Shown: positions 2,285-27,190, numbered from the stretch's first letter. The stretch: DNA of 64,000 bases from Dimorphilus gyrociliatus (GCA_904063045.1 CAJFCJ010000030.1:372001-436000), one strand, 5' to 3'. The notes: generated by a model not told the origin, from the letters alone. Translations and numbers: made by a program.

Positions 2285-3136
2285 AAAAATTTCGCCAACG
2301 ATCTAAAAAAAAAGTTTTGATTGCTAACCTTTCAAAAATTACTATCTTATCTACTATTTACTTTCTTACCAATTGTATGACGAAGAGGTAAATAACATAA
2401 CGATTATTTAAACAAAGAAGATGGGAGTCTCTCCCCTCTACTTGTTTCCTTTTTTATAAATTCTTAAGTAACTATTAGCAAAATAATAAAAAGAAGAAGA
2501 AGAAAGAGAAGAAAATAAACTAACAGAATGAAGGGAAAAAATGAAAGGATGGATAGGGAATAATAGAAAGAATGGAATAAGGATATTTTTCCTATCGCCC
2601 TCTCCTGTCCGCCTCCAAAACGTTCAAAAGAGACGTCGATGTATGATTGACGTGCAATTTACACTCGGTTGTTAACACAGATGACAAACGTGTATTTTAT
2701 ATGCAATTATAGGGCCCACCTTATTCCCTATTATTTTCTCAAGGTTCTTTTTGTTGTTCGCCTTGTTTTCTCAACTTTTAGTCTTGTCCAGTCAATAATT
2801 TTACTCTTTTTCTTTAAAGACACGTCTTTGCTATTTATACATTTAAAAAAAAAACAATTCTCGATTGGGAATTTATTTTAATGGATCCAAAGTTTCTTTG
2901 CTTTGTAAGAACCTTTTAAAACATGAGACCATTTTAACGGGTTTTCATAATTGAGCTATATAGAGACAAAACTAAGGATATAGAGGGATAAGGAACAACT
3001 TATCTAATCGATTCTCTATAGGGATTTCGTTTTCTCTTTTATAATAATAGACACTTTTAACGGATATGCCGTAAACTTTTAGTCAATATTTGATAAGAAT
3101 ATACAATATACATACGTCAAAAAATTGAAGGCCTAT
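2285..3136 (+). repeat. Dispersed repeat, copy 1 (copy 2 at about 22182-23030)
   Basis: 2285-3060 matches 22182-22957 almost base for base (one substitution noticed, visible as F versus S in the twin track ORFs 2669 and 22566). A more diverged tail continues to about 3136. Confidence 0.9.
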
Positions 3137-6100
3137 TAACCGGTTATCTCTTATATTCTGCTATTCCTTTTATAATTACTATTTACTGTAAAACATACGA
3201 TATATTTATATATTTTCTTTATAAAGTTCAAGCAAATTTTCCAATAGGAAATTGAATGGAAAAAATAATTGCTAGTCCGATAAACCTCATAGGTCTTTTT
3301 TTATAAAGAAAGTATTTAATTTACTCGTTTAGATTTATGGATAATATTAATGAACACTTAACACTTGTAGCCTATAGCATAATATCAATTTTAAAAGTAG
3401 AATCGATAAGTAAAAAATGATAACTTTCTGTGATAGTTATAAATGATACATATAAAGGTACTTACTAAATACATAATCCCAATCTTCGGTGTTACTCGAT
3501 TGAGCAGCCTTTAGAAAGCAGATGAACAGAAATGCTAAAAGTTCTCGCTTCATTATCATATTAATCCCTTATCTTTTTGAAGGTGTGAAAAGGTTTTACT
3601 TGACATGAGTACAAACGAATATGTTTCGTCCTTGAAATATTCTGTTTTCTATATATTTTATCTTCCTTCTCTTCCTATTATACGAGAATTAGGTTTAATA
3701 TTAAATAATTCTTCAACCAACAGTCTTTCTCTTATCTCAATTGGATGAAAACAGTTTGTTTATTAAGCTCAAATTGCAATTATATCTCCAATAGTTTGTC
3801 CGTTTCAACTACTGAAAAGCCAATAAAAAGAAATATAAAATGTAGGCAGAAAATCCTATGGCGACGCTTTTGCCCTTCTCTACTCGATATTATCTCAATC
3901 AGGGAACAGTTTGTCTGTCAGCAACTTCTTTTTCCTTTCCCTCGCGCCAAAATGAAGTAGGCGGTACGGCTGCGCCCTCTAGGGGATGAAATTCTTCTAC
4001 GCTGATAAAAAGTCAGAAGACTAGGCGATGAGAAAAGAACAAGAAATAGTAAAATAAAAAAACAGGAGATGAAAGAGGTTGAAGGAAAATTAGAAAGAAA
4101 TTTAGCTGGAAAAGTATAAACAAACAAATAGGCAAAGAGGAAAATAGGGATATAGAGGGTGTGGGGGAAAACTCGGCCTCTCTCGATAACATCTGTGAAA
4201 TGCATATATATGCAGGTTACGGAATTATTTCTTCTATTTATTGTACTAATTGCATTGGATTCGCATGGGTTAGGGAAGAGTTGGAAGAGAGGACGAGGAA
4301 TGTAGGCGAAAGCCGATTGCTAATTTATATTTTTTTCTAACCCTTCTCTATAATATATCTCACACAGCATGCTAGTATTGAGGAGGAAAGGGTAGAAGAG
4401 AGAGAGAGAGAGAGTGAAAATATATATTTTAAAGCATTATAGACCTACTCCAAAACTACATATACATTACAAATATTACCGTGTATGTACACATGCATAA
4501 ACAATTTATATCTAACGGCTTTTAATCGGATTGCTGCGTGCCTTCACAGCACGAAAAATAGTTTTAGTTTATCCGATAAGAAAATGTCACTGTTTGAATC
4601 GTTTCGATAAGAAACTGCCGTAATAATATTTTTTGTTATTAGTAGAGACATACTATCGTCTGACACGTACACTATACATGTAAAATTTCCGGTTTATTTT
4701 ACCCATATAATTTATATTCATGTACAGAAAAAAAATCACTATTTTCCCTCCTACTTCTCTTCCTCTTCCACTTATCCCTAATTAAATAAAACCAATCATT
4801 AACGACCCTACTTCTTCTCCTCCCACTTTCGTTCACGTGACTTTTGGCATCGTTATCCTATACAATCCATTCACTAATCTTCTTACGTTTTCCTATTCAA
4901 AAAGCTGTTATTATTGTTGTATTTATTTATTTAAGATTAATTAAGGGTTTTATTAGTTTTGATACTAAGCTTATATTTGACAGAGATAAGTAAGGTATAA
5001 GTTTGGAAGGCGTGAAAAGATCAATTTGAATATAAAGTAACCATTTTTGTTTAAATTCTAAAAGTAACTTATTTTGTTAAATGAAGGAGAAATATTACTT
5101 TATTTCTTTGACTTGAAAATCAATTGTAACGAATTGTCTTCTTTTTTCTTTATTATTTAATAGAGTGAAGAAGTGGAAAAGTCACATGATCAACTTACTC
5201 CAGTGGTATTAAGAGGGATTGTGTAGAGCTAATAAGAAGAAAGAAAACTGTGAAATCAATAAAAGACGATGTTTGATGAAAAAGACGCCATATTCTCTCA
5301 TTGTTCAATGCCTTTATCCACGAAGTAAATATATACATTGTACCCGTTAATGAATACATTTAGCGAATAAATGCGACGCTCGAGGCCAACCAACGGCATA
5401 CGAAAGGAAGAGTCAAAGAAGAGCGTATAGCTTGCCTCGGAGCTTATTTATATGTTTATCCCTACATAAATGATTCGGCCAGGTGCCGTAAATACAAACT
5501 GCAAAACAACTCAAGCATAAATCTGTTATTTTAATAACAATGTTTAAGCACTTGAAACTTGCTTTTTGCCCATAGCTAGACAACATCTGCCGATATACTG
5601 TAAGGAAGAAGGAAAACGAAAAAGATGAAGAGGACGGCGCTTGGTGGATGAAAAAAAACCCCCAGACGGCTAAGGAGGGATGAATATATGGATATCGACG
5701 ATCTTGTGATAAATATGTAAATGCATATTTAAACAATTCTTACAATTCCCTAAATCGTCGTTAATTAACGCGAGTAAATTGAGTAGAAATAAACGACACG
5801 AGATAAAAGACATGTTAATTAGTTTTTAACGACCGCCCGCTATTGTAACTCTTTTCTATTTTGACATCTTCATAATAGTAACGGAAGAATCGCTTTATAC
5901 GAATCGTACAAACAACTCTTGCCTCTTTAAGGCACGCAGATGGATTTATAAGAAAGAGAGAAAGGTTAAAGGATGATACTTGGTGAGTGAAAAAGTAGAA
6001 GATTGAAAGTAAAAGAAAAAAAAGAGCAAGAGTTGAGAGGGTAAAATCAACTTTGTTTATGTCTATGTGCCAAAGGTACGTATGTGCAGGGATTTATAGT

Positions 6101-11640: not shown

Positions 11641-12604
11641 ATGATTGTTTATAGAAGCAGTAAACGTCAATTATTATCGGTTGGTGCATTTCTTTCTATA
11701 TTAGTGATATATTATGGCGGAAAAAGTATATTAACGACAATACAACGTAACAAATATAGACCGGATTCCTTAGCTATACATTTGATACTGAATAAATATT
11801 TTCATAAACCGGCCTTTGGTCTACCCTTAAACCTTACAAATCCTTATAAGTACGATTATTCTGAGTATGGTCAATCAATTTACGTTGACGAAATTTTTGA
11901 TGGGAAAGAAAATGGAACTTATATAGAATGCGGTGCTGGTGATGGAGAAACCTACTCTAATAGTTTATTTTTTGAAATTAGACGAAAATGGACGGGTGTA
12001 CTAATTGAAGCAGGTATAAAGACTTATTATTATTATTATTAAGAAATTCCCAAGCTATATAAGACTTAATTTTTGCTTAAAAAAAGGAAGGAAAAATTAC
12101 GATTTATTGAAAATGAAAAAAAGGAAAGCCATATTGATTAATGCCGCTTTAGGGAATAAAACTGAATTGGTTAAATTCATAGAAGCTGGTTTTACTGGTG
12201 GAATTGATAAAAATATGGAGAAATCACATAAAAAATGGATTTTCCAAAATTTTCCTTATAATTTGACAAATTCTAAGCAGCTTATTCAATCTTTTAGATT
12301 TATTGATATAATTGAAGCGGTTGGAATGAAAGTTGTAGATTATTTGATCTTAGATGTTGAAGGATCCGAGATAACTATATTGGAAACTATTCCATTAAGC
12401 CTATACGTTATAAATATTATACAGGTAGAATTTCTAGTTAAAATGGATGTTGAGAAAACCTCAAGAAAACTTGATAAGATCAAAGATATAATTCTGTCAA
12501 CGAATTTATATATATATTTTGATATTATTAAAAATACTGATGCTCTCTTCATCCGAAAAGATATATTCTATGATTTTGAGAAGCGTTCAACCAAACCCTT
12601 ATAA
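11641..12604 (+). CDS. FkbM-family (Methyltransf_21, Drosophila Star-like) SAM-dependent methyltransferase with N-terminal membrane anchor; 2 exons: 11641-12013, 12087-12604
   Basis: Two track ORFs are joined in frame by a 73-nt GT..AG intron (12014-12086, phase 1), giving ...WTGVLIEAG-RKNYDLLKMKKRKAILINAALG. Family motifs: YSEYGQ, TYIECGAGDGETYSNSLFFE..WTGVLIE, DYLILDVEGSEITIL, IIQVEF. Hydrophobic segment LLSVGAFLSILVIYY near the N-terminus. Confidence 0.9.
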
Positions 12605-14673
12605 TTTCATTTCTAGCTGAATACTACTTATGTAAAGTACAAAAAATAGTGAAATAAGTTGTAAATATTGTGTTCTATCAATAGATGGCGTTTTGTTGCT
12701 TTAAACAATTTTCCTTTTCAAATATTTAATGGGACAGCCTTTTTACTGCTCCTGCAAAAGCTGTTGCATAGTTAGATTAAAAACCGAAAATTATACAATG
12801 AAGCGATTGTATAATCACCATGGGAACGTAAATTTTGTTCTTTCATCTCATCTAAATGATTGAAAGGAAAAAGAAGGGAATGCGTAACTACAAAGGTACA
12901 AATTATCTTTGGAATGCTACTTATTACAATAAAGCGTTTTAAGTAACAGATAATGAAAATTTGTTTGGAAAATAAAATAAAATACTATTAAAAGCTACTA
13001 ATTGAAAGAGGAGAAGCAGAGAGAATGAAGAAAACATTCCTGGAATAGTATTACCATATTACGCAATTGCATCAAACTATCTTCCTTTTCTTCTCCTGCA
13101 AGTTGAATAGAGCATAATTAATTAAGATGAAATCGTAAAAAAAAAATCAATATCGAAGCTTAAACTGAACTCAATTTCGATTGAATCTCTTTCATTCGTG
13201 CAAGCTATCAAGAATAAGGATTTCTATAGTAATTGAATAACCTTGTGACATGAGCTGACGTAATAGTTCTTTAAAAGTATACTTTTATTGGAGATACCGT
13301 GACAATAGTTGCTGATTTATTTAAATATTTTTCTATTACAGTCTCCTTCTCTAACTAATCAAGTTTTGATCATTTTAGAATATTCGTATACTAATTTATT
13401 CATAATATTTAAAATTTAAATTCATTATAACGATTTTAAACAGTATAATGAAAATAACCTTCCTTTGTTCAGTCTCTTTATTTTTTTCGGCTTAGACGTT
13501 AAATGATGGAATTAGTCAAACACTGGTCTGATTAGAATAATGAATTATTGCTAAAACGGTAATGGTTGAAGACACTGGTTCTTTATATCTGCCAATATGA
13601 CATCAATAACGGAATACTTCAAACATAAAATCATGATAGAAATAGGTTCTCACTCATAGATAAACAAACTACAACTATGTGTTAAAATTGTTTGCATCAG
13701 TAATATCGAAATTTAAAGAATCCTAATTAAGTGATGTAAATACGCTTATCAGAATGGGAAAATATTCTAAAGAAACTTCTTTGCTGTACTACTTTGTTAT
13801 ACGTGAAAAGCGAGTTTACTTTCAATTTTTATATAAGTTAAATATGTAATACGTTTTGAAGCAAAATCTATAAGTTAATAAAGTTATTCATTAAAAATAA
13901 CTATATATATAAGGTCAAATGTTAAGTTAAAAAGAAAAAAGAGTCTTTTTTCAGAAATTGCCCTTTTCTCTTGTCATAAAATCAAGGATTCGTAAAATTT
14001 AGTTTCATCAATTTTTTACTGAGAAAAATTTTATAATAAACCCATGTTTCAGCATATTACAGAATATCTTTAAAATATTGAATTTGCAGTCTTTTCAGAG
14101 TCCAATACTTGCATATTTCAATAATGAGTTCAAAAGTTTAATAAAAGTGCTTTATTTGTAAATTATATTTTAATTTTTATATTATAGTCTTATATATTAC
14201 CCAATTTAATCTCTTTTAACATATTTATTATAATCTTCAAATATGTTGTCTGAGATAATACTTTTTAAGCTATTTTATTTGTACCCTATAACACTCAAGA
14301 TGGCGTTAGCATACGATTAGTTTGTTATACTAGTTTTGTATTTCAGAACCTTTTTTTTGGATTGTTTTTGTATTGTTTTTTTTCTTTCTAGTAAAGTATT
14401 TTGTCAACAATTTGTCATACAAAGTTGAAAATATAAAAATAACTTTTTTCAATCAAAATTGTTTCATATAACCAAAAAAGAATATCAATTATTCACAGAT
14501 ATAAATTTTATACTGTAGCATAAAATCATCAACAGTCTCTTCAATGTCATTAACATTGAAAGATAAAATAATCTTTTTTTTATTTAAATAATATGAGAAA
14601 TGTAAAAAAATAAAAAAAGTCATATAAAAGAAACAAATATAGCAACCATAATTTGCTAATTGATTAGTGGTGT

Positions 14674-16415
14674 TCAATGGAAAAGTAGACAAGGGATAGA
14701 CGATGATATAGCTAGAAGGAAAATGCTAAATTTTGTTTGGGTGCCTGATACTTCTGTGGTTGTCAAAATGGTTGGTTCAGTGGTTGGTTTAGTAGTTGGT
14801 ACAGTGATTGGTTCAGTGATCAGAGTGATGGTTGATTTCGCAGTTAGTTCCGTTGTTGGTTTGGTAGTTGGTTTAGTTGTCGGAGTGATGGTTGTTGGTT
14901 CAGGAGCAATGTTAAAAAAGTCTTCGCATTTCGTCATAATCCAGTCGGGAACTTTAAAAAATTAGACAAGTCATTAGGTTACAATATCTAATCAAATATG
15001 TAGTTAACCCTACTGGAAGGCAATCCGTCACTTGATGTACAAGTTTCTGGGGATTCATTGAGTTCACTTCGATCTGTAATAAAATCTTTTACTAAGGCTT
15101 CTGGAGGAGCTCCGAACTTCATCGCGCATTTGAAGCTATCAAGAACATCATCGGTTACAATAGCACATGCTCCAATTCTTGAAGCTGGAGCGGAAAAAGT
15201 GATCCTTGGCTCGTCAAAGGTTCCAAAGGTTAACGCCTTGTCGTCCTTATCAGTCATAATACCTTTAGGTGCCCAGTTTCCGCTGTAGTCGTTAAAGCAA
15301 AAAGCAAGATTTTGGTTGTTACCTAAGTTTGCATGAGTTTTTCTTTTACAGTTTGGTATAGCTATTGAGAAACAAATTAAAGTGAAAATGTGTGTTTTAA
15401 AAACATATTGATATATACCCATAGCAACGACAAAAGCCGAATACGAATCAGTTAAATTGCCATTTTTAAAACCAGAGCAAGAATATTTGCCGGTAAGGTA
15501 AGTTGCTGTTACCAGAACAGTAAGATCAAAAACGTTTGGCGTTGCGAATCGAAAAAGGTGTTTTAAGAAACTATAGACTTTAAATGAGTCTGAAACAACC
15601 ACACCTATCCCAGTCTGACTTTGAATAAGTGAATAAATGACGGCGTCGTGATCATTTTCGTTAATATCGTTGCATCTTAATACTATTGATGTGTTAAGTC
15701 TGGCAACAGTATTGGCTAGTCTCGTATTCTTATCGGGAAGTTTTAAAAATTCCAGACAGCATTTCTTTAAATAAGCTGGTACATTGGTGTCCCCATTAGC
15801 ATGATTGTCACAAGTAGTTCCAGAAAATTCTGGAGGCTTAGCATGATAGCTTTTATCATGAACAAGATCATATGGGGGAGATTCAAAATCAAAAGCACAT
15901 TTGAACGACGCGTTCTTATCAATGAGAGCACAGGCTCCTACAGCTAAAATAAATAACAATCAATTAGTTAAAACCTTTCTATTAAACTGATTTTATATAC
16001 TCGAATATTTAGCGTTTGAACGACCAGCATTATCATCATGACTTGTAAATTGAACGAAATTCATGAGATTGTCAACTGTCTCTATCTTTACTCTTGGTGC
16101 CCAATTTCCAGCATATTACGTATGGCAATAGCGATATCTTTATTTAGTTCATAGTCTTGATTCGGTACATCAACCTTCGCACACTTAGGAGTTTCATCTT
16201 AAAAATGAAAAAGTTTTAAACTTGTCAATACAGAACTGTCTTTGAATACAGCTGTGTTTACTGGGCGATAGCGCAGTTTAGCCCCATCACATATTACAAT
16301 AACTGAAAAGCAAAGTTTTTAACTTTCATTTTAAAGTTAGAAATATAATAAAACTTAATAAAAACTCACTGGAGAAAGTAATAAAAATCCATTGAAATGC
16401 TTGGAACTTGAACAT
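14674..16415 (-). pseudogene. Ig-superfamily GPI-anchored protein, copy A; 5' half disrupted, 3' half intact. Exons: 16370-16415, remnant exon 2 from 16302, 16001-16197, 15419-15943, 15014-15361, 14674-14951
   Basis: Aligns exon for exon with copy C. Relative to C it has a 299-bp deletion (junction at CAG 16231-16233) removing most of the first Ig exon and its donor, a GAA>TAA stop at 16116-16118, and a 1-bp deletion (exon 3 is 197 nt versus 198). Exons 4-6 keep open frames and GT/AG sites. Confidence 0.75.
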
Positions 16416-17506
16416 TTTGTCGAGTTTCGTTCGAAAGTCTAGCTCCTTATGGTGCAACACAATAAATTGTGAAAGAATTAGTTAATTTGTAGTTGTTTTT
16501 AGTTGGCTTTATATTTACTTCCTAAATTACAACTTAGATTAGATATTTTAATGACCCGATGGTTAAGATTACTTAAGTAGTGCGAAATAGATACAGTGAT
16601 GAATAATTTACAATTTTGTATTCTCTTTTTATAAAGACACTTTTAGAACTGATAATAGGGAATAATCAAAAAAAAGAAACTAAGTAAAGAAGTATTTATA
16701 ACTAATTTACGAATAATTGAATACAAAACAATGAAAAAGTCAAGAGAAGGATGAAATTTTATTGCAACGTCAAGAGATTTTACTATATTAGTATCATCAT
16801 CATAATTTAAAAGTAGTTTCGATATAATTTTAAATTATTGTTTAACAAGTCTGTCTATACAGTAAAATAATAAATTCAATATATATAATGCTAAATGAAA
16901 ACTGCCAAGGTGAATAAAAAAATAGTATTAGAAGAGAAGGTGTATTTGAAAATATTCTTCTGAAAGAGATCAATTTAAATTTCGAAGAACCTAAATAATT
17001 TTAAAAAGAAGAAATCTCAACCTTTAAGGGGTAACTTTGAAATCAGATAACATTTGAACTTTTCAAACAGATTTAATATAATCTTCAAATATATTGTCTG
17101 AGATAATACTTTTCAAGCTATTTTAATTACACGATAAAAGACTTAAGATTTTGTTAGCATACGATTAGTTTTTTATAATATTTAAGAATCTTTTTTCGGA
17201 TTTATTTTTTTATTTTCTTTTTTCTTTCAAGTAAAGTATTTTGTCAACAATTTGTCATACAGGAGTTGAAAATATAAAAACAACTTTTTTCAATCAAAAT
17301 TGTTTCATATAGCCATAAAGGAATATCAATTATTCACAGATATATGGTATAAAGTCACCAACAATCTATTCAATGTCATTAATATTGAAAGAGAAAATCA
17401 TCTTTTTTATATTTAAACAATTTGAGAAATTGTAAAAAAATAAAAATAAGAGTCATGTAAAAAAAGCAAATATAGCAATCATAATTTGCTAAATAATTAG
17501 TTGTTT

Positions 17507-20500
17507 TCAATGGAAAAGTAAACAAGTGACAGAAGAAAATATTGCTAGAACGAAAATACTAAATTTTGTTTGGGTAGCTGATGCTTCTGTGGTTGTCGAA
17601 ATGGTTAGTTCGGTGGTTCCTTTGGTAGATAGTTTGGTGATAGATATGGTTGTTGGTTCGGTAGTTTGCTTGGTGGTTGGTTTAGAAGGTTGTTTGACAG
17701 TTGGTTTGGTAGTCGGTTTCGTAGTCAGAGTGATGGTTGGTTTAGTAGTTGGTACAGTGATTGGTTCAGTGGTCAGAGTGATGGTTGATTTCGCAGTTAG
17801 TTCCGTTGTTGGTTTGGTAGTTGGTTTAGTTGTCGGAGTGATGGTTGTTGGTTCAGGAGCAATGTTAAAAAAGTCTTCGCATTTCGTCATAATCCAGTCG
17901 GGAACTATAAAAAATTACATAACAAATTAAGTTACAATACTTACTCCAATATGTAGTTAAACATACTTGAAGGCAATCCGTCACTTGATGTACAAGTTTC
18001 TGGAGATACATTAGGTTCACTCCTATCTGTAATAAAATCTTTAATTAAGGCTTCTGGAGGGGCTCCAAATTTCATTGAGCACTTGAAGCTATCAAGAACA
18101 TCATCAGTTACAATAGCACATGCTCCGATTCTTGAAACTGGAGCGAAACTGCCGATCCTTGGCTCGTCAAAAGTACCCAAGGTTAACACCTTGTCGTCCT
18201 TATCAGTCATAGTAACTTTAGGTGCCCAGTTTCCACTGTAGTCGTTGAAGCAAAAAGCAAGATTTTGGTTATTACCCAAGTTTGCATGAGTTTTTCTTTT
18301 ACAGTTTGGTATAGCTATTGAGAAAAAAATTAAAGTGAAAACGTTGTTTCAATAACATATTGATATATACCCATAGCAACGACAAAAGCTGAATAAGAAT
18401 CAGTTAAATTGCCATTTTTAAAACCAGAGCAAGAATATTTGCCAGTGAGCTGAGTTGTTGTATCCAGAACAGTAAGATCAAAAACGTTTGGCGTTTCGAA
18501 TCGAAATAGGTTTTTTAAGTGATCATAAACTTCAAATGAGTTTGTAAGAATCCAACCTTCACCAGTTTGACTTTGAGTAAGTGTATAAGCGCCAGCGTCG
18601 TGTTCATTTTCGTTAATATCGTTGCATTTTAATACTGTTGATGCGTCAAGTCTGGCAACAGTATTGGTTAGTCTTGTATTCTTATCGGGAAGTTTAAGAA
18701 ATTCCAGACACTTCTCCTTCAAATAAGCTGGTACATTGGTGTCTACACTAGCAGGATTCTCACAAATAGTTCCAGAAAATTCTGGAGGCTCATCATGATA
18801 ACTTTTGTCAAAAACAAGATCATATGGGGGAGCTTCAAAATCAAAAGCACATTTGAACGACGCGCCCTTATCAATGAGAGCACAGGCTCCTACAGCTAAA
18901 ATAAATAACAATCAATTAGTCAAAACCTTTCTATTAAACTTATTTTATATACTCGAATATTTAGCGTTTGAAGGACCAGCATTATCATCATGACTTGTAA
19001 ATTGAGCGAAATTCATGAGATTGTTAGCTGTCTCTATCTTTACTCTTGGTGCCCAATTTCCAGCGTATTCCGTATGGCAATAAGCAATATCTTTATTTTG
19101 TACATAGTCTTGATTCGGTACATCAACCTTCGCACACTTAGGAGTTTCATCTTAAAAAAGAAAAATTTTTAAATTTGTCAATACAGTAGTGAAAAACTGG
19201 AAGAATACACACCAATTGCTGAAAGATATGCATGATAGTAAGTGTCTCTGCTGCCATTACGGAACCCTACACATTCATACAATCCAGTTGTATATTCATC
19301 TACTTTTGTATTGAGAAGGTGATAGTTGTCGTCATCCGGTAGTTTAAATCTGCTTTGAAGGTGTATCAAGATTTCGTAGTTGTTGGCAATAATATAATGA
19401 TCACTGGTTTGACTTGCTTTAAATACCCAATTTGTATATTCGTAATAACCTGGTGCATCTATAGCTGAGCAATTTAAAAGTGCAGAACTGTCTTTGAATA
19501 CAGCTGTGTTTACTGGGCGATAGCGAAATTTCAGAGGTTGAGTGGTTGGTTTGGTAGTTAGTTTGGTGGTCGGAGTGATGGTTGTCGATTCATGAGCAAT
19601 GTTGAAAAAGTCCTCGCATTTCGTCATAATCCAGTCAGGAACTATAAAATATTAGACAAGAAATTAAGTTACAATACTTACTCCAATATGTAGTTAAACA
19701 TACTTGAAGGCAATCCGTCACTTGATGTACAAGTTTCTGGAGCTTCATTAGGTTCACTCCGATCAGTAATAAAATCTTTAATTAAGGCTTCTGGAGGGGC
19801 TCCAAATTTCATTGAGCACTTGAAGCTATCAAGAACATCATCAGTTACAATAGCACATGCTCCGATTCTTGAAACTGGAGCGAAACTGCCGATCCTTGGC
19901 TCGTCAAAAGTACCCAAGGTTAACACCTTGTCGTCCTTATCAGTCATAGTAACTTTAGGTGCCCAGTTTCCACTGTAGTCGTTGAAGCAAAAAGCAAGAT
20001 TTTGGTTATTACCCAAGTTTGCATGCGTTTTTCTTTTACAGTTTGGTGTAGCTATTGAGATAATAATTAAAGTGAAAACGTTGTTTCAATAACATATTGA
20101 TATATATACCCATGGCAACGACAAAAGCTGAATAAGAATCAGTCAAATTGCCGTTTTTAAAACCAGAGCAAGAATATTTGCCTGTCAGCTGAGTTGTTGT
20201 ATCCAGAACAGTAAGATCAAAAATGTTTGGCGTTGCGAATCGAAAGATATTTTTTAAATGCTCAACAACCTCAAATGAGTTTGTAAGAATCCAACCTTCA
20301 CCAGTTTGACTTTGAGTAAGAGTATAAACGCCAGCGTCGTGTTCATTTTCGTTAATATCGTTGCATTTTAATACTGTTGAAGCGTTAAATCTGGCAACAG
20401 TGTTGGTTAGTCTCGTATTCTTATCAGGAAGTTTAAGAAATTCCAGACACTTCTCCTTCAAATAAGCTGGTACATTGGTGTCTACACTGGCAGGATTCTC

Positions 20501-21406
20501 ACAAGTAGTTCCAGAAAATTCTGGAGGCTCATCATGATAACTTTTGTCAAAAACAAGATCATATGGGGGAGCTTCAAAATCAAAAGCACATTTGAACGAC
20601 GCGCCCTTATCAATGAGAGCACAGGCTCCTACAGCTAAAATAAATAACAATCAATTAGTTGAAATCTTTCTATTAAACTTATTTTACATACTCGAATATT
20701 TAGCTTTGGAAGAACCAGGATTATCATCATGACTTGTAAATTGAGCGAAATTCATGAGATTGTTAGCTGTCTCTATCTTTACACTTGGTGCCCAATTTCC
20801 AGCGTATTCCGTATGGCAATAAGCGATATCTTTATTTTGTTCATAATCTTGATTTGGTACATCAACCTTCGCACAATTAGGAGTTTCGTCTTAAAAATAA
20901 AAAAGTTTTAAACTTGTCAATAGAGAATTAAAAAACTTTAAGAAGACACACCAATTGCTGAAAGATATGCATGATAGTAAGTGTCTCTGCTGCCATTACG
21001 GAACCCTACACATTCATACAATCCAGTTGTATATTCATCTACTTTTGTATTGAGAAGGTGATACGTGTCGTCATCCGGTAGTTTAAATCTGCTTTGATGG
21101 TGTGGCAAGATGTCGTAGTTGTTGGCAATAATATAATGATCACTGATTTGACTTGCTTTAAATACCCAATTTGTATATTCGTAATAACCTGGTGCATCTA
21201 TAGCTGAGCAATTTAAAAGTGCAGAACTGTCTTTGAATACAGCTGTGTTTACTGGGCGATAGCGAAGTTTAGCCCCATCGCATATTACAATAACTGAAAA
21301 ACAAAGTTTTTAACTTTCATTTTAAAATTAGAAATATAATAAAACTTAATAAAAACTCACTGGAGAAAGTAATAAAAGCCCATTGAAATGTTTGGAACTT
21401 GAACAT
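17507..21406 (-). CDS. Ig-superfamily GPI-anchored protein, copy B, a double-length fusion gene (about 1118 aa). Exons: 21361-21406, 20952-21293, 20692-20889, 20110-20634, 19704-20051, 19213-19641 (chimeric), 18953-19150, 18371-18895, 17967-18314, 17507-17904
   Basis: All ten exons have GT/AG boundaries, all introns are phase 1, and the spliced frame (3357 nt) is open. Architecture: signal peptide MFKFQTFQWAFITFSIIVICDG, four [Ig V/I-like + six-Cys GNWAP domain] modules, Thr/Pro stalk, hydrophobic C-terminal tail (KFSIFVLAIFSSVTCLLFH). Confidence 0.85.
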
Positions 21407-22181
21407 TTTATCGAGTTCCGTTTGAAAGTCAAGCTGCTTCTGGTCTAACACGACAAGTTGTGAAAGAATTCCTTAATTTGTAGTTGTTTCTAGGTGGCTA
21501 TAAATTTACTTCCTAAATTACAACTTAGATTAGATATTTTAATGACCCGATGGTTAAGATTACTTAAGTACTGCGAAATAGATAAAGTGATGAATAATTA
21601 ACAATTTTGTATTCTCTTTTTATAAAATTACTGTTTTAACAGACACATTTATAACTGATAATAGGGAATAATCAAAAAGAGAGGCTAAGTAAAGAAGTAT
21701 TTATAACTAATTTACGAATAATTGAATATAAAACAATGAAAAAGTTAAGAGAAAGATGAAATTTTATTGCAACGTCGAGTGATTTTACTACATGAGTGTC
21801 ATCATAAGAATTTAAAAGTATTTTCTATATATTTTTAACTTATTGTTTAACAAGTCTGTTATACGGTAAAATAATAAATTCAATATTGTTTATGCTAAAT
21901 GAATACTGCCAAGGTCAATAAAAAAATATTATTAAAAGAGAAGGTGTATTTGAAAATATTCATCTTAAAGAGATCAATTTAAATTTCGAAGAGCCTTAAT
22001 AATTTTAAAAGAAGAAATCTCAACCTTTAAGGGGTAACTTTGAAATCAGATAACATTTGAATGTTTCCTCTATAAACAGCTTTTATAGCTAATATTTTAA
22101 TGTTACCTTTTATCTATTAGATTCCGTTCTTTGGCATTTTATTATAAATATTTAAATTATATGTTTTTTAATTAAAATTAA

Positions 22182-23030
22182 AAAAATTTCGCCAACGATC
22201 TAAAAAAAAAGTTTTGATTGCTAACCTTTCAAAAATTACTATCTTATCTACTATTTACTTTCTTACCAATTGTATGACGAAGAGGTAAATAACATAACGA
22301 TTATTTAAACAAAGAAGATGGGAGTCTCTCCCCTCTACTTGTTTCCTTTTTTATAAATTCTTAAGTAACTATTAGCAAAATAATAAAAAGAAGAAGAAGA
22401 AAGAGAAGAAAATAAACTAACAGAATGAAGGGAAAAAATGAAAGGATGGATAGGGAATAATAGAAAGAATGGAATAAGGATATTTTTCCTATCGCCCTCT
22501 CCTGTCCGCCTCCAAAACGTTCAAAAGAGACGTCGATGTATGATTGACGTGCAATTTACACTCGGTTGTTAACACAGATGACAAACGTGTATTTTATATG
22601 CAATTATAGGGCCCACCTTATTCCCTATTATTTTCTCAAGGTTCTTTTTGTTGTTCGCCTTGTTTCCTCAACTTTTAGTCTTGTCCAGTCAATAATTTTA
22701 CTCTTTTTCTTTAAAGACACGTCTTTGCTATTTATACATTTAAAAAAAAAACAATTCTCGATTGGGAATTTATTTTAATGGATCCAAAGTTTCTTTGCTT
22801 TGTAAGAACCTTTTAAAACATGAGACCATTTTAACGGGTTTTCATAATTGAGCTATATAGAGACAAAACTAAGGATATAGAGGGATAAGGAACAACTTAT
22901 CTAATCGATTCTCTATAGGGATTTCGTTTTCTCTTTTATAATAATAGACACTTTTAATATGCCGTAAACTTTTAGTCAATATTTGAAAACAGTATACAAT
23001 ATAGACACATCGAAAAATTAAAGGACCATT
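22182..23030 (+). repeat. Dispersed repeat, copy 2, located between Ig copies B and C
   Basis: Same sequence as 2285-3136 at offset 19897. No TIR, TSD or coding capacity recognised. Confidence 0.9.
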
Positions 23031-24433
23031 AGAATATTCACATACTAATTTATTCATAATCTTTAAAATTTTAATTCATTATAACGATATTAAATAGTAT
23101 ATTAATAATTATACACAACTTTGCTTTGTTCAATCTTTTTAATTTTTTTTTGGCTTATACGTTACATGATGGAATAAGTCAAACAGTAGTGATCTTAATA
23201 GAATAATGAATCATTACTAACACGGAAATGGTTGAAGCCACTGGTTCTTTATATCTATCAATATGAAATCAATAATGGACTACTTCAAAGATAAAATCAT
23301 GATAGAAATAGGTTCTCACTCAGAGATAAACAAACTAGAACTCTGCGTTAAAATTGTTGGTATCAGTAATATCCAAAATGTAAAGAATCCAACTTAAATG
23401 ATGTAAATACCCTTATCAGAATGAGAAAATATTTTAAAGAAACTTCTTTGTTATACTTAAAGTGTTTATTTGACTAGAAATCAAAGAAAAAAGCTTTTTC
23501 TATTTCAATTGAATCAAGTTGAAAAGAATTTATTGTTAAAAGCATAGAATTCAACGAGTTCCTACTATTAGACTGGGTGAAAAGCGAGTTTACTTCCAAT
23601 TTTTATATAAGTTAAATATGTAATAGTTTTGAAACGAAATCTAAAAGTTAATAAAGTTTAATAGTTATTAAAAAAAACTATATATATAAGGTCAAATGCT
23701 AAGTTAAAGAGGATAAAGAGTCTTTATTGAGAAATTGCTCTTTTCCTTTTGTCATAAAATCAAGGATTCGTAAGATTTTGTTTCATCAATTTTTTTCTGA
23801 GATAAGTTTAATCATTAATCACCAATGTTTCAGTACATTACAGAATATATTAAAAATATTGTATTTGCAGTCTTTTCAGAGTCAAATACTTGCAAATTTC
23901 AATAATAAGTAAAAAAGTTTGACAGAAATGTAAATTATCTTTTAATTTTTATATTATACTCTTATTTTATATCCAATTAAATCTCTTTCAACTTTTCGAA
24001 CAGATTTATTATAATCTTCAAATATATTGTCCGAGATAATAATTTTCAAGCTCTTTCAATGATACCATAAAACACTTAAGATGGCGTTAGCATACGATTA
24101 GTTTTTTATAATATTTAAGAATCTTTTTTCGGATTTATTTTTTTATTTTCGTTTTTCTTTCAAGTAAAGTATTTTGTCAACAATTTGTCATACAAAGTTG
24201 AAAATATAAAAACAACTTTTTTCAATCAAAATTGTTTCATATAACCAGAAAAGAATATCAATTATTCACAGATATATAGTATAAAATCATCAGCAGTCTA
24301 TTCAATAGCATTGACAGTGAAAGAGAAAATCATCTTTTTTTTAGTTAAATAACTAGAAAAGTAGTAAAAAAAATAAAAGTCATGTAAAAGAAACAAATCT
24401 AGCAACCATAATTAGTCAATTAATTAGTTGTGT
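23030..24433. repeat. Duplicated 3' flank of the Ig genes (paralogous to about 13377-14673 and, in part, 17057-17506)
   Basis: Colinear blocks, e.g. AGAATATTC..TACTAATTTATTCATAAT at 13377 and 23030, and CAACAATTTGTCATAC in all three flanks. Confidence 0.85.
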
Positions 24434-26426
24434 TCAATGGAAAAGTACACATGTGATAGATGAAAATATAGCAAGTAGGAAAATACTAAATTTTGTTTGG
24501 GTAGCTGATGCTTCTGTGGCTGTCAGAGTGGTTGCTTTAGTGGTTGCTTTGGTAGTTGGTTTGGTGGTTGCTTTGGTAGTTGGTTTAGTTGTCGGAGTGA
24601 TGGTTGTTGGTTCAGGAGCAATGTTAAAAAAGTCTTCGCATTTCGTCATAATCCAGTCGGGAACTATAAAAAATTACATAACAAATTAAGTTACAATACT
24701 TACTCCAATATGTAGTTAAACATACTTGAAGGCAATCCGTCACTTGATGTACAAGTTTCTGGAGATACATTAGGTTCACTCCGATCTGTAATAAAATCTT
24801 TAATTAAGGCTTCTGGAGGGGCTCCAAATTTCATTGAGCACTTGAAGCTATCAAGAACATCATCAGTTACAATAGCACATGCTCCTATTCTTGAAGCTGG
24901 AGCAGAACTGCCGATCATTGGCTCGTCAAAAGTGCCAAAGGTTAACGCCTTGTCGTCCTTATCAGTCATATTAACTTTAGGTGCCCAGTTTCCACTGTAG
25001 TCGTTGAAGCAAAAAGCGAGATTTTGGTTAATACCTAAGTTTGCATGAGTTTTTCTTTTACAGTTTGGTATAGCTATTGAGAAACAAATTAAAGTGAAAA
25101 CGTTGTTTCAATAACATATTGATATATACCCATAGCAACGACAAAAGCTGAATAAGAATCAGTTAAATTGCCGTTTTTAAAACCAGAGCAAGAATATTTG
25201 CCTGTCAGCTGAGTTGTTGTATCCAGAACAGTAAGATCAAAAACGTTTGGCGTTTCGAATCGAAATAGGCTTTTTAAGTGATCATAAACTTCAAATGAGT
25301 TTGTAAGAATCCAACCTTCACCAGTTTGACTTTGAGTAAGTGTATAAGCGCCAGCGTCGTGTTCATTTTCGTTAATATCGTTGCATTTTAATACTGTTGA
25401 TGCGTCAAGTCTGGCAACACTATTGGTTAGTCTCGTATTCTTATCGGGAAGTTTAAGAAATTCCAGACACTTCTCCTTCAAATAAGCTGGTACATTGGTG
25501 TCTACACTGGCGGGATTCTCACAAGTAGTTCCAGAAAATTCTGGAGGCTCATCATGATAACTTTTGTCAAAAACAAGATCATATGGGGGAGCTTCAAAAT
25601 CAAAAGCACATTTGAACGACTCGCCCTTATCAATGAGAGCACAGGCTCCTACAGCTAAAATAAATAACAATCAATTAGTTGAAATCTTTCTATTAAACTT
25701 ATTTTATATACTCGAATATTTAGCGTTTGAAGGACCAGCATTATCATCATGACTTGTAAATTGAGCGAAATTCATGAGATTGTTAGCTGTCTCTATCTTT
25801 ACTCTTGGTGCCCAATTTCCAGCGTATTCCGTATGGCAATAAGCAATATCTTTATTTTGTACATAGTCTTGATTCGGTACATCAACCTTCGCACACTTAG
25901 GAGTTTCATCTTAAAAAAGAAAAATTTTTAAATTTGTCAATACAGTAGTGAAAAACTGGAAGAATACACACCAATTGCTGAAAGATATGCATGATAGTAA
26001 GTGTCTCTGCTGCCATTACGGAACCCTACACATTCATACAATCCAGTTGTATATTCATCTACTTTTGTATTGAGAAGGTGATACGTGTCGTCATCCGGTA
26101 GTTTAAATCTGCTTTGAAGGTGTATCAAGATTTCGTAGTTGTTGGCAATAATATAAGTATCACTGGTTTGACTTGCTTTAAATACCCAATTTGTATATTC
26201 GTAATAACCTGGTGCATCTATAGCTGAGCAATTTAAAAGTGCAGAACTGTCTTTGAATACAGCTGTGTTTACTGGGCGATAGCGAAATTTAGCCCCATCG
26301 CATATTACAATAACTGAAAAACAAAGTTTTTAACTTTCATTTTAAAGTTAGAAATATAATAAAACTTAATAAAAACTCACTGGAGAAAGTAATAAAAATC
26401 CATTGAAATGCTTGGAACTTGAACAT
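24434..26426 (-). CDS. Ig-superfamily GPI-anchored protein, copy C (about 562 aa). Exons: 26381-26426, 25972-26313, 25712-25909, 25130-25654, 24726-25073, 24434-24663
   Basis: Spliced frame is open (1689 nt) with five phase-1 GT-AG introns of 56-67 nt. Ig hallmarks: LLNCSA..TNWVF..YHLLNTKV..TGLYEC and VLKCND..FDLTV..TGKYSC. Two paralogous Cys-rich domains carry YAGNWAP and YSGNWAP. Thr-rich stalk followed by a hydrophobic tail with no cytoplasmic domain (GPI signal inferred). Confidence 0.87.
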
Positions 26427-27190
26427 TTTATCGAGTTCCGTTTGAAAGTCAAGCTGCTTCTGGTCTAACACGACAAATTGTGAAAGAACTGCTTAATTTG
26501 TAGTTGTTTCTAGGTGGCTATAAATTTACATCTTAAATTTACAACTTAGATTAGAACCTTTAATAACCCTATTGTTAAGATTACTTAGCTACTTCAAAAT
26601 AGATAAAATGATGAATAATTAACAATTTTGTATTCTCTTTTTATAAAATTACTATTTTTATATAGATATTGAAAATTGCCAATAGGCAATAATCAAAAAG
26701 AGAGGCTAAGTAAAGAAGTATTTATAACTAAGTCACGAATAAATGAATACAAAACAATGAAAGAGTTAAGAGAAGGATGAAATTTTATTGCAACTTCAAG
26801 TGATGTTACTATGGAAATGTCATCATCATAATTTAAAAGTATTTTCGATATAATTTTAACTTATTGTTTAACAAGTATGTCTATACGGTAAAATAAAAAA
26901 TTCAATATAGTTAAGGTTAAATGAAAACTGCCAAGGTCAATAAAAAAATATTATGAAAGGGGAGGGGGTTTTTGAAAATGTTCAACTTAAAGAGATCAAT
27001 TTAAATTTCGAAGAACCTTAAAAATTTTAAAAAGTAGAAATGTGAACCTATAGGTGGTTAGCTTTGAAATCAGATATCATTTGAATGTTTCCTCTATAAA
27101 CAGCTTTTATGGCAAAAATTTTAGTGTTACCTTTTATCTATTAGATTCCGTTCTTTTGCATTTTATTATAAATATTTAAATTAAGTGTTC
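26427..27190. repeat. Duplicated 5'/promoter flank of the Ig genes (paralogous to about 21407-22170 and 16416-17057)
   Basis: Colinear blocks, e.g. TAAGTAAAGAAGTATTTATAACTAA, AACTGCCAAGG and AAAGAGATCAATTTAAATTTCGAAG, upstream of all three start codons. Confidence 0.85.

Follow-up and report, generated by a model that had tools for sequence, protein, structure and literature searches.

The gene cluster on the minus strand at positions 14674-26426 of the window (the whole stretch of 64,000 nucleotides of DNA from the tiny marine annelid Dimorphilus gyrociliatus that was analysed) is, in the reading that we favor with moderate confidence, a recently duplicated annelid cluster of a small immunoglobulin superfamily (IgSF) family, whose members are built of V plus constant-type repeats, are probably GPI-anchored, and are so far known from two related worms. 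Four tandem units of one gene, each ~4 kb long, make up the cluster. The original prediction described each standard gene as encoding a signal peptide, two modules of an Ig domain followed by a six-cysteine (six-Cys) domain, a Thr/Pro stalk and a hydrophobic tail, and all these elements are present in the intact gene, unit C:

24434..26426, minus strand: unit C, intact gene (public DgyrCDS14160 = P0004, 562 aa)
26426-26381, minus strand: unit C exon 1
25972..26313, minus strand: unit C exon 2, end of the signal peptide and V-set Ig domain 1
25712..25909, minus strand: unit C exon 3, first half of six-Cys domain 1 (Cys1, Cys2, GNWAP; profile E 1.9e-14)
25130..25654, minus strand: unit C exon 4, second half of six-Cys domain 1 (Cys3 to Cys6) and V-set Ig domain 2
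24726..25073, minus strand: unit C exon 5, six-Cys domain 2 up to Cys5 (profile E 4.5e-45)
24434..24663, minus strand: unit C exon 6, Cys6 helix, Thr/Pro (TTKP/TTKA) stalk, 17-aa hydrophobic C-terminus and stop

From the N- to the C-terminus, the product thus consists of a signal peptide, V1, six-Cys 1, V2, six-Cys 2, the Thr/Pro stalk and the hydrophobic tail. In this 6-exon model, every intron has GT-AG ends, is of phase 1 and spans 56-67 nt. The borders of domains and exons do not coincide, exon 4 running from the second half of six-Cys domain 1 through the whole of Ig 2. P0004 contains all six exon translations in order; exact look-up of P0004 in assemblies yielded no record and no transcript-like match.

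The other units were located by blastn with the unit C exons. As had been proposed, the four units are in different states, with C intact, B2 and B1 fused in frame, and A disrupted:

17507..21406, minus strand: B2 + B1, in-frame fusion, four-module gene (~1,118 aa if B1's own stop is used)
21406-19213, minus strand: B2
19150-17507, minus strand: B1
19213..19641, minus strand: hybrid exon, B2 exon 6 into B1 exon 2 (one open frame, 142 codons, present in P0022)
14674..16415, minus strand: unit A, pseudogene or gene remnant
13375..27189: whole tandem duplication by self-blastn (A 13375-17078, B1 17052-19531, B2 19536-22165, C 23029-27189)
22182..23031, plus strand: 850-bp insert that separates B2 from C and copies window 2285-3138 at 98%

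The hybrid exon is composed of nt 1-106 of B2 exon 6, then 4 nt, then nt 24-342 of B1 exon 2; the fusion removed the remainder of the stalk along with the tail, spacer, exon 1 and intron 1. The public model DgyrCDS14159 (P0022, 1510 aa) covers all B2/B1 exon translations, the last of them, B1 exon 6, for 114 of its 131 residues, and is probably a chain of two genes and a pseudogene. In unit A, 72 nt of exon 2 are kept (16302-16231) with no donor, there is a 296-bp deletion relative to C, and exon 3 (16197-16001) has 197 nt where 198 are expected, a frameshift that brings stops into frame; pN/pS in exon 4 of this unit is 0.5-0.8. Self-blastn blocks of 1.7-2.6 kb (85.6-97.8% identity) include flanks and introns. 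A transposon origin of the 850-bp insert was rejected because the genome holds only two copies, both within the window.

Duplication, fusion, a pseudogene and mosaic exchange are all seen at this one locus, which would have grown by tandem duplication of ~4 kb, with a deletion joining two units, decay breaking another, and gene conversion producing the mosaic copies. In a compact and datable form, the locus illustrates the duplication of domain pairs, the in-frame fusion of genes and gene conversion. It is extremely improbable that the cluster is instead an assembly artefact, in which alleles or collapsed repeats were set in tandem. The units are indeed 86-98% identical, and the 5-kb contig of the related species holds one copy only; however, they differ in structure (deletion, fusion, stalk length) and in their flanks, unlike a simple allelic pattern, B2 and C are parted by the 850-bp insert, and the same layout underlies the public annotation.

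The assignment of the first domain of the module to the Ig V/I-like type, made originally from the sequence, is borne out by sequence motifs, profile matches and the predicted fold of a paralog. In the alignment of 22 V domain copies, the first Cys and a Gly are invariant, and the Trp and the second Cys are present in at least 90%; the B- and F-strand cysteines, the C-strand Trp and the G-x-Y-x-C motif are all found. When the family profile was compared with known Ig domains, matches spanned Robo1/2, DIP, Dpr and IgLON at 1.6e-14 to 1e-9 (Robo1 Ig, 1.6e-14; DIP-alpha, 8.8e-11; OBCAM, 9.5e-10). Pfam V-set and Ig_3 score above cutoff in the paralogs P0001 and P0002. Unit C exon 2 alone reached E 0.028 against V-set (15.1 bits, below the curated cutoff of 26), and P0004 gave no Pfam match at E<=0.1. 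The V domain in the AF2 model of a paralog has RIG-5 IG1 as the best match (Z 14.3, rmsd 1.9, 100 aligned); JAM-A D1 (Z 14.2) and DIP-alpha (13.8) also matched over ~100 residues (rmsd 1.9-2.2), and Dpr, Kirrel2, Neph1, Necl-1/2 and SYG-1 are further structural neighbours.

The second domain is an orphan by sequence. Its six cysteines and motif pattern align in both modules and in ~31 domain copies genome-wide (most at E 1e-25 to 1e-33), so this part of the original description stands; GNWAP, named there in the module, is how the broader motif of the family, G-x-[YW]-x-P, reads at this locus. Comparison of 23 copies with Pfam returned nothing at E<=10, PF07654 and PF08205 included, and the Pfam analysis of every unit C exon, of the unit A read-through frame and of the public proteins likewise returned nothing for this domain. 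An hhalign comparison of the six-Cys profile with the V profile of the same family indicated no relation (probability 0.2%), and a PDB sequence-profile search produced a single chance match (E 0.61). A word-index search of proteins, queried with a 335-aa piece of a paralog, gave no match, although length limits may have excluded true relatives. The candidates considered for the six-Cys domain, namely SRCR, CUB, PAN/apple, C-type lectin and chitin-binding, found no support from Pfam or from the predicted fold.

The predicted structure points to a different classification from the original one, in which the six-Cys domain was a separate kind of domain: by its modelled fold and structural neighbours, it is most likely itself a constant-type Ig domain in disguise, not a new fold. 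Because introns split the window's own six-Cys domains, both AF2 models represent the single-exon paralog L001, which is 24-36% identical to the window's copies. The pLDDT of the six-Cys domain was 91.8 when modelled with the V domain and 84.3 alone, and both runs gave the same seven-strand sandwich with a C-terminal helix. Strands 4 (residues 50-54) and 5 (residues 57-65) of the model are parted by a 2-residue turn, which fits a D-E hairpin and hence the C1-type layout. The best Foldseek matches were TCR C-beta and IgNAR C3 (E 4e-4, TM 0.5). In the VIA alignment against all of PDB, IgM C-mu (Z 8.1), PD-L2 D2 (8.0) and FcRn alpha3 (7.8) led the list, with the C domains of TCR, MHC alpha3, beta2m, butyrophilin and B7-1 next, and nearly all of the top 50 were of this kind; a second neighbour search gave PD-L1 D2 (Z 8.1), beta2m and MHC-I alpha3. 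The second domains of ICOS-L and Necl-4 were also among the neighbours. Language-model (Atlas) neighbours of unit C exon 5 and of module 2 fell in C1-set and CD80-like C2-set clusters (0.86-0.88), which we treat as a lead only.

We consider it very unlikely that the domain is a truly new fold or a non-Ig sandwich and its Ig-like model an AlphaFold artefact. Such a reading could appeal to the silence of all sequence methods on any link to an Ig family, to structural Z scores of only 7.4-8.1, the 'middling' range of the tool, and to the shallow alignments behind the models (23-45 paralogous rows); moreover, AlphaFold2 may lean to Ig constant domains because these are so common in its training data. 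Against it, two independent runs agreed fully in secondary structure and with high confidence, the top 50 neighbours from both searches belonged almost uniformly to one Ig subtype rather than to a mix of sandwiches, a Cys pair lies on the same strands as in Ig domains, and the independent language-model lead is to C1 and C2-set_2. In the constant-type arrangement, Cys2-Cys4 would be the canonical B-F disulfide of the seven-strand sandwich, and two extra disulfides would join Cys1 to Cys5 and Cys3 to Cys6, the latter tying on the C-terminal helix. Cys1 and Cys5 are lost jointly in module 1 of C23 (P0002) and in the relative's counterpart P0014. If the six-Cys domain is constant-type, each module pairs V with C, the arrangement of B7, nectin and Kirrel proteins.

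Unit C begins with what is by inspection a hydrophobic leader and ends with 17 residues of mean Kyte-Doolittle 2.09 and no residues after them. The same ending recurs in all nine gene units of the family, with a terminal hydrophobic stretch of ~13-18 residues, small residues before it and nothing after. The sequence signs of the GPI type (signal peptide, hydrophobic end without cytoplasmic residues, short polar spacer) are present by inspection only, and from the tail alone the proteins are probably GPI-anchored. The originally proposed surface protein, with signal peptide, Ig domains, Thr/Pro stalk and hydrophobic tail, is thus upheld, with the addition that it lacks cytoplasmic residues. We infer a role in adhesion or recognition. 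The proteins would be secreted via the N-terminal signal peptide, and the stalk, probably O-glycosylated, would set the ectodomain off the membrane; the membrane-distal V domain may, as in nectin, Kirrel, JAM, IgLON or B7 proteins, engage a binding partner carried by another cell or surface, with the disulfide-braced C-type domains serving as putative rigid spacers. Any signalling would need a co-receptor because there is no cytoplasmic tail.

The genome-wide paralog count suggested by the original prediction came to ~31 six-Cys domains in nine gene units at five loci, with two modules per protein in the standard gene, four in the fused gene and 2-7 in the paralogs. Among 1.84e9 representative proteins, 21 matched the six-Cys profile, all from D. 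gyrociliatus or one related species, presumably another dinophilid, and none from cnidarians. With no Pfam match for the six-Cys domain, these 21 matches and public records limited to DgyrCDS entries, the family corresponds to no named one, and the original prediction had not recognised it as such; a literature search on DgyrCDS names or on Dimorphilus with immunoglobulin found nothing relevant. For copy C, the searches took single exons or the public protein P0004 as query.

Sequences of the related species (runs SRR23372228, SRR23372229, SRR23372231 and SRR31984834) include a full counterpart, L006, with the same exon layout. Eleven clades each unite one domain of D. gyrociliatus with one related-species fragment (SH-aLRT 84-100), the window's four near-identical copies counting as one side. 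One family gene keeps its neighbours in the related species, and divergence between the species is 55-63% identity for the family gene and 58-62% for the neighbouring genes. As judged from these comparisons, recent turnover appears confined to the window locus, and domains elsewhere mostly correspond 1:1 to those of the relative. The original prediction proposed birth-and-death evolution. The family as a whole does not appear to change rapidly, given the 1:1 clades, the kept neighbours and the divergence equal to that of neighbouring genes; the features of birth-and-death evolution are seen at this one locus (four units, one broken), and elsewhere domains pair 1:1 with the relative, whose copy number is covered by one 5-kb contig.

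The same observations weigh against the idea that these are immune or allorecognition receptors comparable to Hydractinia Alr or amphioxus VCBP, with birth-and-death evolution and diversifying selection acting on them. There is a precedent in Alr, with its clustered Ig genes and cryptic domains (PMC9546547), and the tandem cluster with its pseudogene, fusion and mosaic copies fits the pattern. In addition, between C and B2, Ig 1 differs by 8 nonsynonymous and 0 synonymous changes, 5 of them in the C'-C''-D stretch (p = 0.019 vs. exons 3-5, Fisher's test), but the numbers are low and a conversion event could account for them, and pN/pS in other exons is 0.16-0.38. D. gyrociliatus is solitary, not colonial. 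ITAM and ITIM are absent because there is no cytoplasmic tail, and Pfam showed no chitin-binding or other immune-linked domain; none of the features examined in sequence and models points to immunity or allorecognition. On the whole, we regard an immune role as quite improbable.

A different surface role in place of general cell adhesion, such as recognition between gametes or between dwarf males and females, or attachment at the epidermis, cilia or cuticle, is unlikely. The mucin stalk, the GPI-like tail and the 2-7 Ig pairs suit any extended surface binder, and recent copy gain with replacement changes in the outermost V domain, as found here, is also typical of reproductive proteins; however, the V neighbours are mostly neural or epithelial adhesion molecules, even if the resemblance is generic.

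Returning to the favored reading of a small IgSF family, the worm proteins share with B7, butyrophilin, nectin and Kirrel proteins an N-terminal V domain paired with a membrane-proximal domain of constant type (probable in the worm), and whole V-C pairs are duplicated in both groups, 4Ig-B7-H3 being a V-C-V-C form. The B7-type proteins are transmembrane with cytoplasmic tails, whereas the worm family has a GPI-like tail and a mucin stalk, up to seven V-C pairs per chain, and a probable constant-type domain with two putative extra disulfides, a predicted C-terminal helix and no PF07654 or PF08205 match. IgLON, RIG-5 and DIP proteins resemble the worm family in an all-Ig ectodomain and a lipid anchor (both putative in the worm) and in first-domain binding (proposed in the worm), but have three I-set-like domains with no V-C alternation or stalk, and are conserved across bilaterians, as opposed to two worms.

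The family is new by sequence but most likely ordinary in kind, because its mystery six-Cys domain is most likely a constant-type domain of antibodies in disguise. More tentatively, the worm may have, in a protostome, a genuine pairing of V with a C1-type Ig domain, with 2-7 such pairs in each chain. C1-set domains had not been reported outside vertebrates according to PMC11926128 (2025). That work describes a sponge tandem (SAML / RTK, EV-set + C1-set) in which, likewise outside vertebrates, a C1-type domain comes after a V-like one, and it gives PD-L2 as a look-alike of the sponge C domain. The sponge domains have solved structures and canonical B, C, E and F strand motifs (PMC11926128), whereas the worm domain has a predicted fold and lacks these motifs. 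Were the tentative reading true, vertebrates would have invented neither the seven-strand ABED/CFG constant domain nor the pairing of it with V, constant-type domains could drift past all sequence recognition yet keep the fold, and the worm module would be the annelid counterpart of the sponge EV-C1 tandem; a constant-type call that held experimentally would bear on the debate about an origin of C1-type domains and of V-C pairing before the vertebrates. The six-Cys domains, as a sequence-orphan domain family, merit an Ig clan entry of their own, and their nine gene units add an undescribed annelid surface-protein family.

Like the worm family, the IgSF family Hydractinia Alr has its genes in a cluster, includes pseudogenes and keeps invariant cysteines, and the Ig nature of its domains was shown mainly by structure prediction, the sequence motifs being missing (PMC9546547). 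The worm domains would be a further case of Ig domains seen only via structure prediction and invisible to sequence profiles, and invertebrate IgSF repertoires may therefore be undercounted. The Alr complex comprises 41 genes, is highly polymorphic and has a demonstrated allorecognition role; its proteins are transmembrane, with V- and I-set domains and, in many cases, ITAM/ITIM (PMC9546547), in contrast to worm proteins that have no residues past the hydrophobic tail. In the worm family exons and public proteins, we detected no chitin-binding or other non-Ig Pfam domain. Amphioxus VCBP likewise combines, in an invertebrate, V-type Ig domains with a cysteine-rich C-terminal domain, but is secreted and has the order V-V plus chitin-binding domain, whereas the order in the worm is V-C-V-C.

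Four copies of one gene unit lie on the minus strand of the window between 26426 and 14674 (genome size 77.9 Mb, GC about 31%), and the tandem Ig and six-cysteine gene units described in the original prediction were recovered in the three states claimed, with unit C intact, units B2 and B1 fused and unit A broken. Units B2, B1 and A were located by blastn with the exons of unit C, combined with translation. Self-comparison of the window shows that the duplicated blocks take in introns and flanks, with 85.6–97.8% identity.

Gene units and duplicated blocks in the window
26426-24434, minus strand: unit C, intact, six exons
26426-26381, 26313-25972, 25909-25712, 25654-25130, 25073-24726, 24663-24434, minus strand: exon model of unit C
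From 21406, minus strand: unit B2, exons 1–5 normal, exon 6 hybrid
19641-19213, minus strand: hybrid sixth exon of B2 (in a single frame: exon 6 nucleotides 1–106, 4 nt, and the following unit's exon 2 starting at nucleotide 24)
19150-17507, minus strand: unit B1, in-frame continuation of B2
16415-14674, minus strand: unit A, broken by an exon 2 deletion and an exon 3 frameshift
23029-27189, 19536-22165, 17052-19531 and 13375-17078: duplicated extents of C, B2, B1 and A, respectively (self-comparison)
22182-23031: 850-bp insert between B2 and C, with its other copy at 2285-3138

All five introns of unit C are GT-AG, in phase 1 and 56–67 nt long. The six exon translations occur in order in the public protein P0004 (DgyrCDS14160, CAD5125979.1, 562 aa), and the agreement between exon translations and the public D. 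gyrociliatus proteins from the profile search is letter for letter. Because the hybrid exon keeps one frame, B2 runs directly into B1; the resulting gene has four modules and, provided that B1's own stop is used, encodes about 1,118 aa. In unit A, exon 2 has been cut to 72 nt by a 296-bp deletion and lacks a donor site, and exon 3 has lost one base, with stops following. The public model DgyrCDS14159 (P0022, 1510 aa; 14674-21406) strings B2 and B1 together with those exons of A that escaped damage, linking B1 to A by splicing away the hydrophobic tail of B1, 17 codons ahead of the B1 stop. This link is unproven, and DgyrCDS14159 has probably been over-merged in annotation; should the model be correct, the 3′ half of pseudogene A remains in use.

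The encoded protein consists of a signal peptide, a first V-set Ig domain, a first six-Cys domain, a second V-set Ig and six-Cys pair, a Thr/Pro stalk and a hydrophobic end. The stalk is made of TTKP/TTKA-like repeats and varies in length among units (exon 6 of 230, 398 and 278 nt). The hydrophobic end comprises 17 residues with none following; ahead of it come small residues (Ala, Ser) and a short polar spacer, an arrangement that, judged by inspection, looks typical of a GPI signal.

The first domain of the module is clearly a V-set Ig, despite its near-invisibility to Pfam in the window's protein, where V-set matches exon 2 of unit C with an E-value of only 0.028 and full-length P0004 has no Pfam match. 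A profile of the family's Ig copies matches Ig domains of Robo, DIP, Dpr and IgLON (E 1.6e-14 and weaker), and the paralogs P0001 and P0002 exceed the Pfam cutoffs for V-set and Ig_3. The AlphaFold2 model of a paralog V domain matches RIG-5 IG1 with Z 14.3, as well as the first domains of JAM-A (D1), DIP/Dpr, Kirrel2, Necl and SYG-1.

The six-Cys domain is an orphan by sequence, but not by predicted structure. None of the 23 copies searched matched a Pfam family at E ≤ 10, and no paper naming these genes was found in the published literature, in line with the earlier statement that it was not recognised as a named family. A search of PDB sequences with the six-Cys profile found nothing, and hhalign gave no sign of kinship with the V domain of this same family. 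The copies in the window are interrupted by introns, so the domain was modelled from a paralog in which it lies within a single exon (L001, C6:1870001-1880000). AlphaFold2 gave a pLDDT of 91.8 for this domain together with the following V domain and 84.3 alone, with an identical set of seven strands and a C-terminal helix in both runs. The best Foldseek matches of the model were TCR C-beta and IgNAR C3 (E 4e-4, TM 0.5). Structure alignment against 48,161 PDB representatives gave IgM C-mu (Z 8.1), PD-L2 D2 (8.0) and FcRn alpha3 (7.8), and these, along with TCR C, MHC alpha3, beta2-microglobulin, butyrophilin and B7-1 C domains, fill nearly all of the top 50 places; a second structural comparison returned PD-L1 D2 (8.1), beta2m and MHC-I alpha3. 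For this predicted structure the Z values are modest, and the signal lies in the uniformity of the neighbour list. The named language-model neighbours of the window's module 2 are C1-set and CD80-like C2-set clusters (0.86–0.88), a neighbourhood that serves as a lead only.

In the model, strand 4 (residues 50–54) connects to strand 5 (57–65) through two residues, a turn that fits a D-E hairpin of the C1-type ABED/CFG layout rather than a C2-type C′ strand. Cys2 on strand B and Cys4 on strand F occupy the positions of the usual Ig disulfide, and Cys1 and Cys5 are jointly absent in one module of P0002 and in P0014, its counterpart in a related species; from these strand positions and this joint loss, we infer the pairs Cys1-Cys5, Cys2-Cys4 and Cys3-Cys6, the last of which would tie on the helix. 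Across the family, the motif located after the B-strand cysteine reads G-x-[YW]-x-P, with GNWAP as its local version; we take this motif to resemble the G-F-Y-P of C1 domains. Intron positions within the six-Cys domain vary among modules and genes.

A search of the genome with the six-Cys profile identified about 31 domains at five loci: C30, the window (8), C6 (15, spread over three neighbouring genes with 7, 6 and 2 modules), C12 (3), C23 (2) and C1 (2). The same sort of stalk and hydrophobic tail ends every gene unit. P0002, P0001 and P0003, the public proteins of the single-locus paralogs on C23, C12 and C1 (segments L003, C23:545001-553000; L004, C12:2304001-2313000; and L005, C1:3430001-3439000), begin at internal methionines within the first V domain, and the signal-peptide exons of their genes seem to have been overlooked by annotation. 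At C12, an intron of about 60 nt inside the third six-Cys domain (L004:6250-6330) stays open in frame and is spliced out in P0001.

Among 1.84 billion representative proteins, the profile had 21 matches at E ≤ 0.001, five of which are D. gyrociliatus proteins (P0001–P0004 and P0022, which clusters with P0004). The remaining matches with a source looked up all came from Logan assemblies, and those traced further belong to runs of the related species (SRR23372228, SRR23372229, SRR23372231 and SRR31984834). This species has a full counterpart of the window gene (L006) with the same coding exons and 55–63% identity in exons 2–5. The C12 gene also has a counterpart there, flanked by the same neighbours, which are themselves 58–62% identical. 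In the tree of six-Cys domains, eleven clades, with SH-aLRT of 84–100, each pair one domain of D. gyrociliatus (or the four near-identical copies in the window) with a single fragment of the relative. Given these paired clades and an identity similar to that of the neighbours, the family is old relative to the species split: it predates the divergence of the two species and evolves no faster than neighbouring genes, and recent gain is confined to this window. Thus, of the proposed lineage-specific recognition or adhesion family under birth-and-death evolution, an Ig surface-protein family with recent tandem gain at this locus holds, but family-wide fast turnover is not supported, given that domains elsewhere mostly pair one to one with the relative.

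Within the locus, the units form a mosaic: exon 3 has the same sequence in B1 and C, and exon 5 of B1 is closer to B2, with 6 differences, than to C, with 13. Among the intact units, pN/pS in exons 3–5 is 0.16–0.38. In the exon of the first V domain, comparison of C with B2 shows 8 replacement changes, 5 of them within the C′-C″-D stretch, and 0 silent ones (8:0, p = 0.019, Fisher's test against the other exons, with small counts). This pattern, on such counts, suggests either that the outer V domain is under selection or that a conversion event was followed by change. In unit A, pN/pS is relaxed in exon 4 (0.5–0.8) but not in exon 5 (0.16–0.19), so that decay or selection is uneven within an otherwise broken unit. 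Compared with C, exon 4 of A (15420-15941) carries about 49 replacement and 18 silent changes, concentrated in the C-C′-C″ part of the second V domain; exon 5, with 12 replacement and 20 silent changes, looks constrained.

The architecture suggests lipid-anchored surface proteins on a mucin stalk, with a function in binding or adhesion. The membrane-distal V domain would bind a partner, by analogy with nectin, Kirrel, JAM, IgLON and B7 molecules, and the putative constant-type domains, braced by disulfides, could act as rigid spacers, with reach determined by module number (2–7) and stalk length. Because there is no cytoplasmic tail, signalling, if any, would require a partner protein. Immune, allorecognition and reproductive roles may each be considered candidates, on which the present data are neutral.

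The closest known kinds are the V plus CD80-like-C pair of B7, butyrophilin, nectin and Kirrel and the GPI-anchored Ig adhesion molecules. Compared with these, the putative constant-type domain of the D. gyrociliatus family is unrecognisable by sequence and is predicted to have two extra disulfides and a helix; moreover, a single chain can contain up to seven alternating V-C pairs, the ectodomain stands on a mucin stalk, and the family is found in two related species only. In Hydractinia Alr, a clustered IgSF family, the Ig nature was established through structure prediction (PMC9546547). Sponge SAML/RTK structures contain a V-like domain in tandem with a C1-set domain, which that study describes as the first C1-set from a non-vertebrate (PMC11926128); the D. 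gyrociliatus family, if its fold is confirmed, would parallel this in a protostome.

The 850-bp insert has two copies genome-wide, both in the window, 98% identical and 20 kb apart, and carries a 70-aa frame without a Pfam match. It was considered as a transposon family but, with no further copies in the genome, looks instead like a local segmental copy. Immediately upstream of the cluster, two adjoining open frames (11641-12604, plus strand) probably belong to a single gene split by a short intron; the second (12107-12601, plus strand) has a match at E 2e-9 to PF05050, the FkbM-type methyltransferase domain, whose family is more familiar from bacteria.
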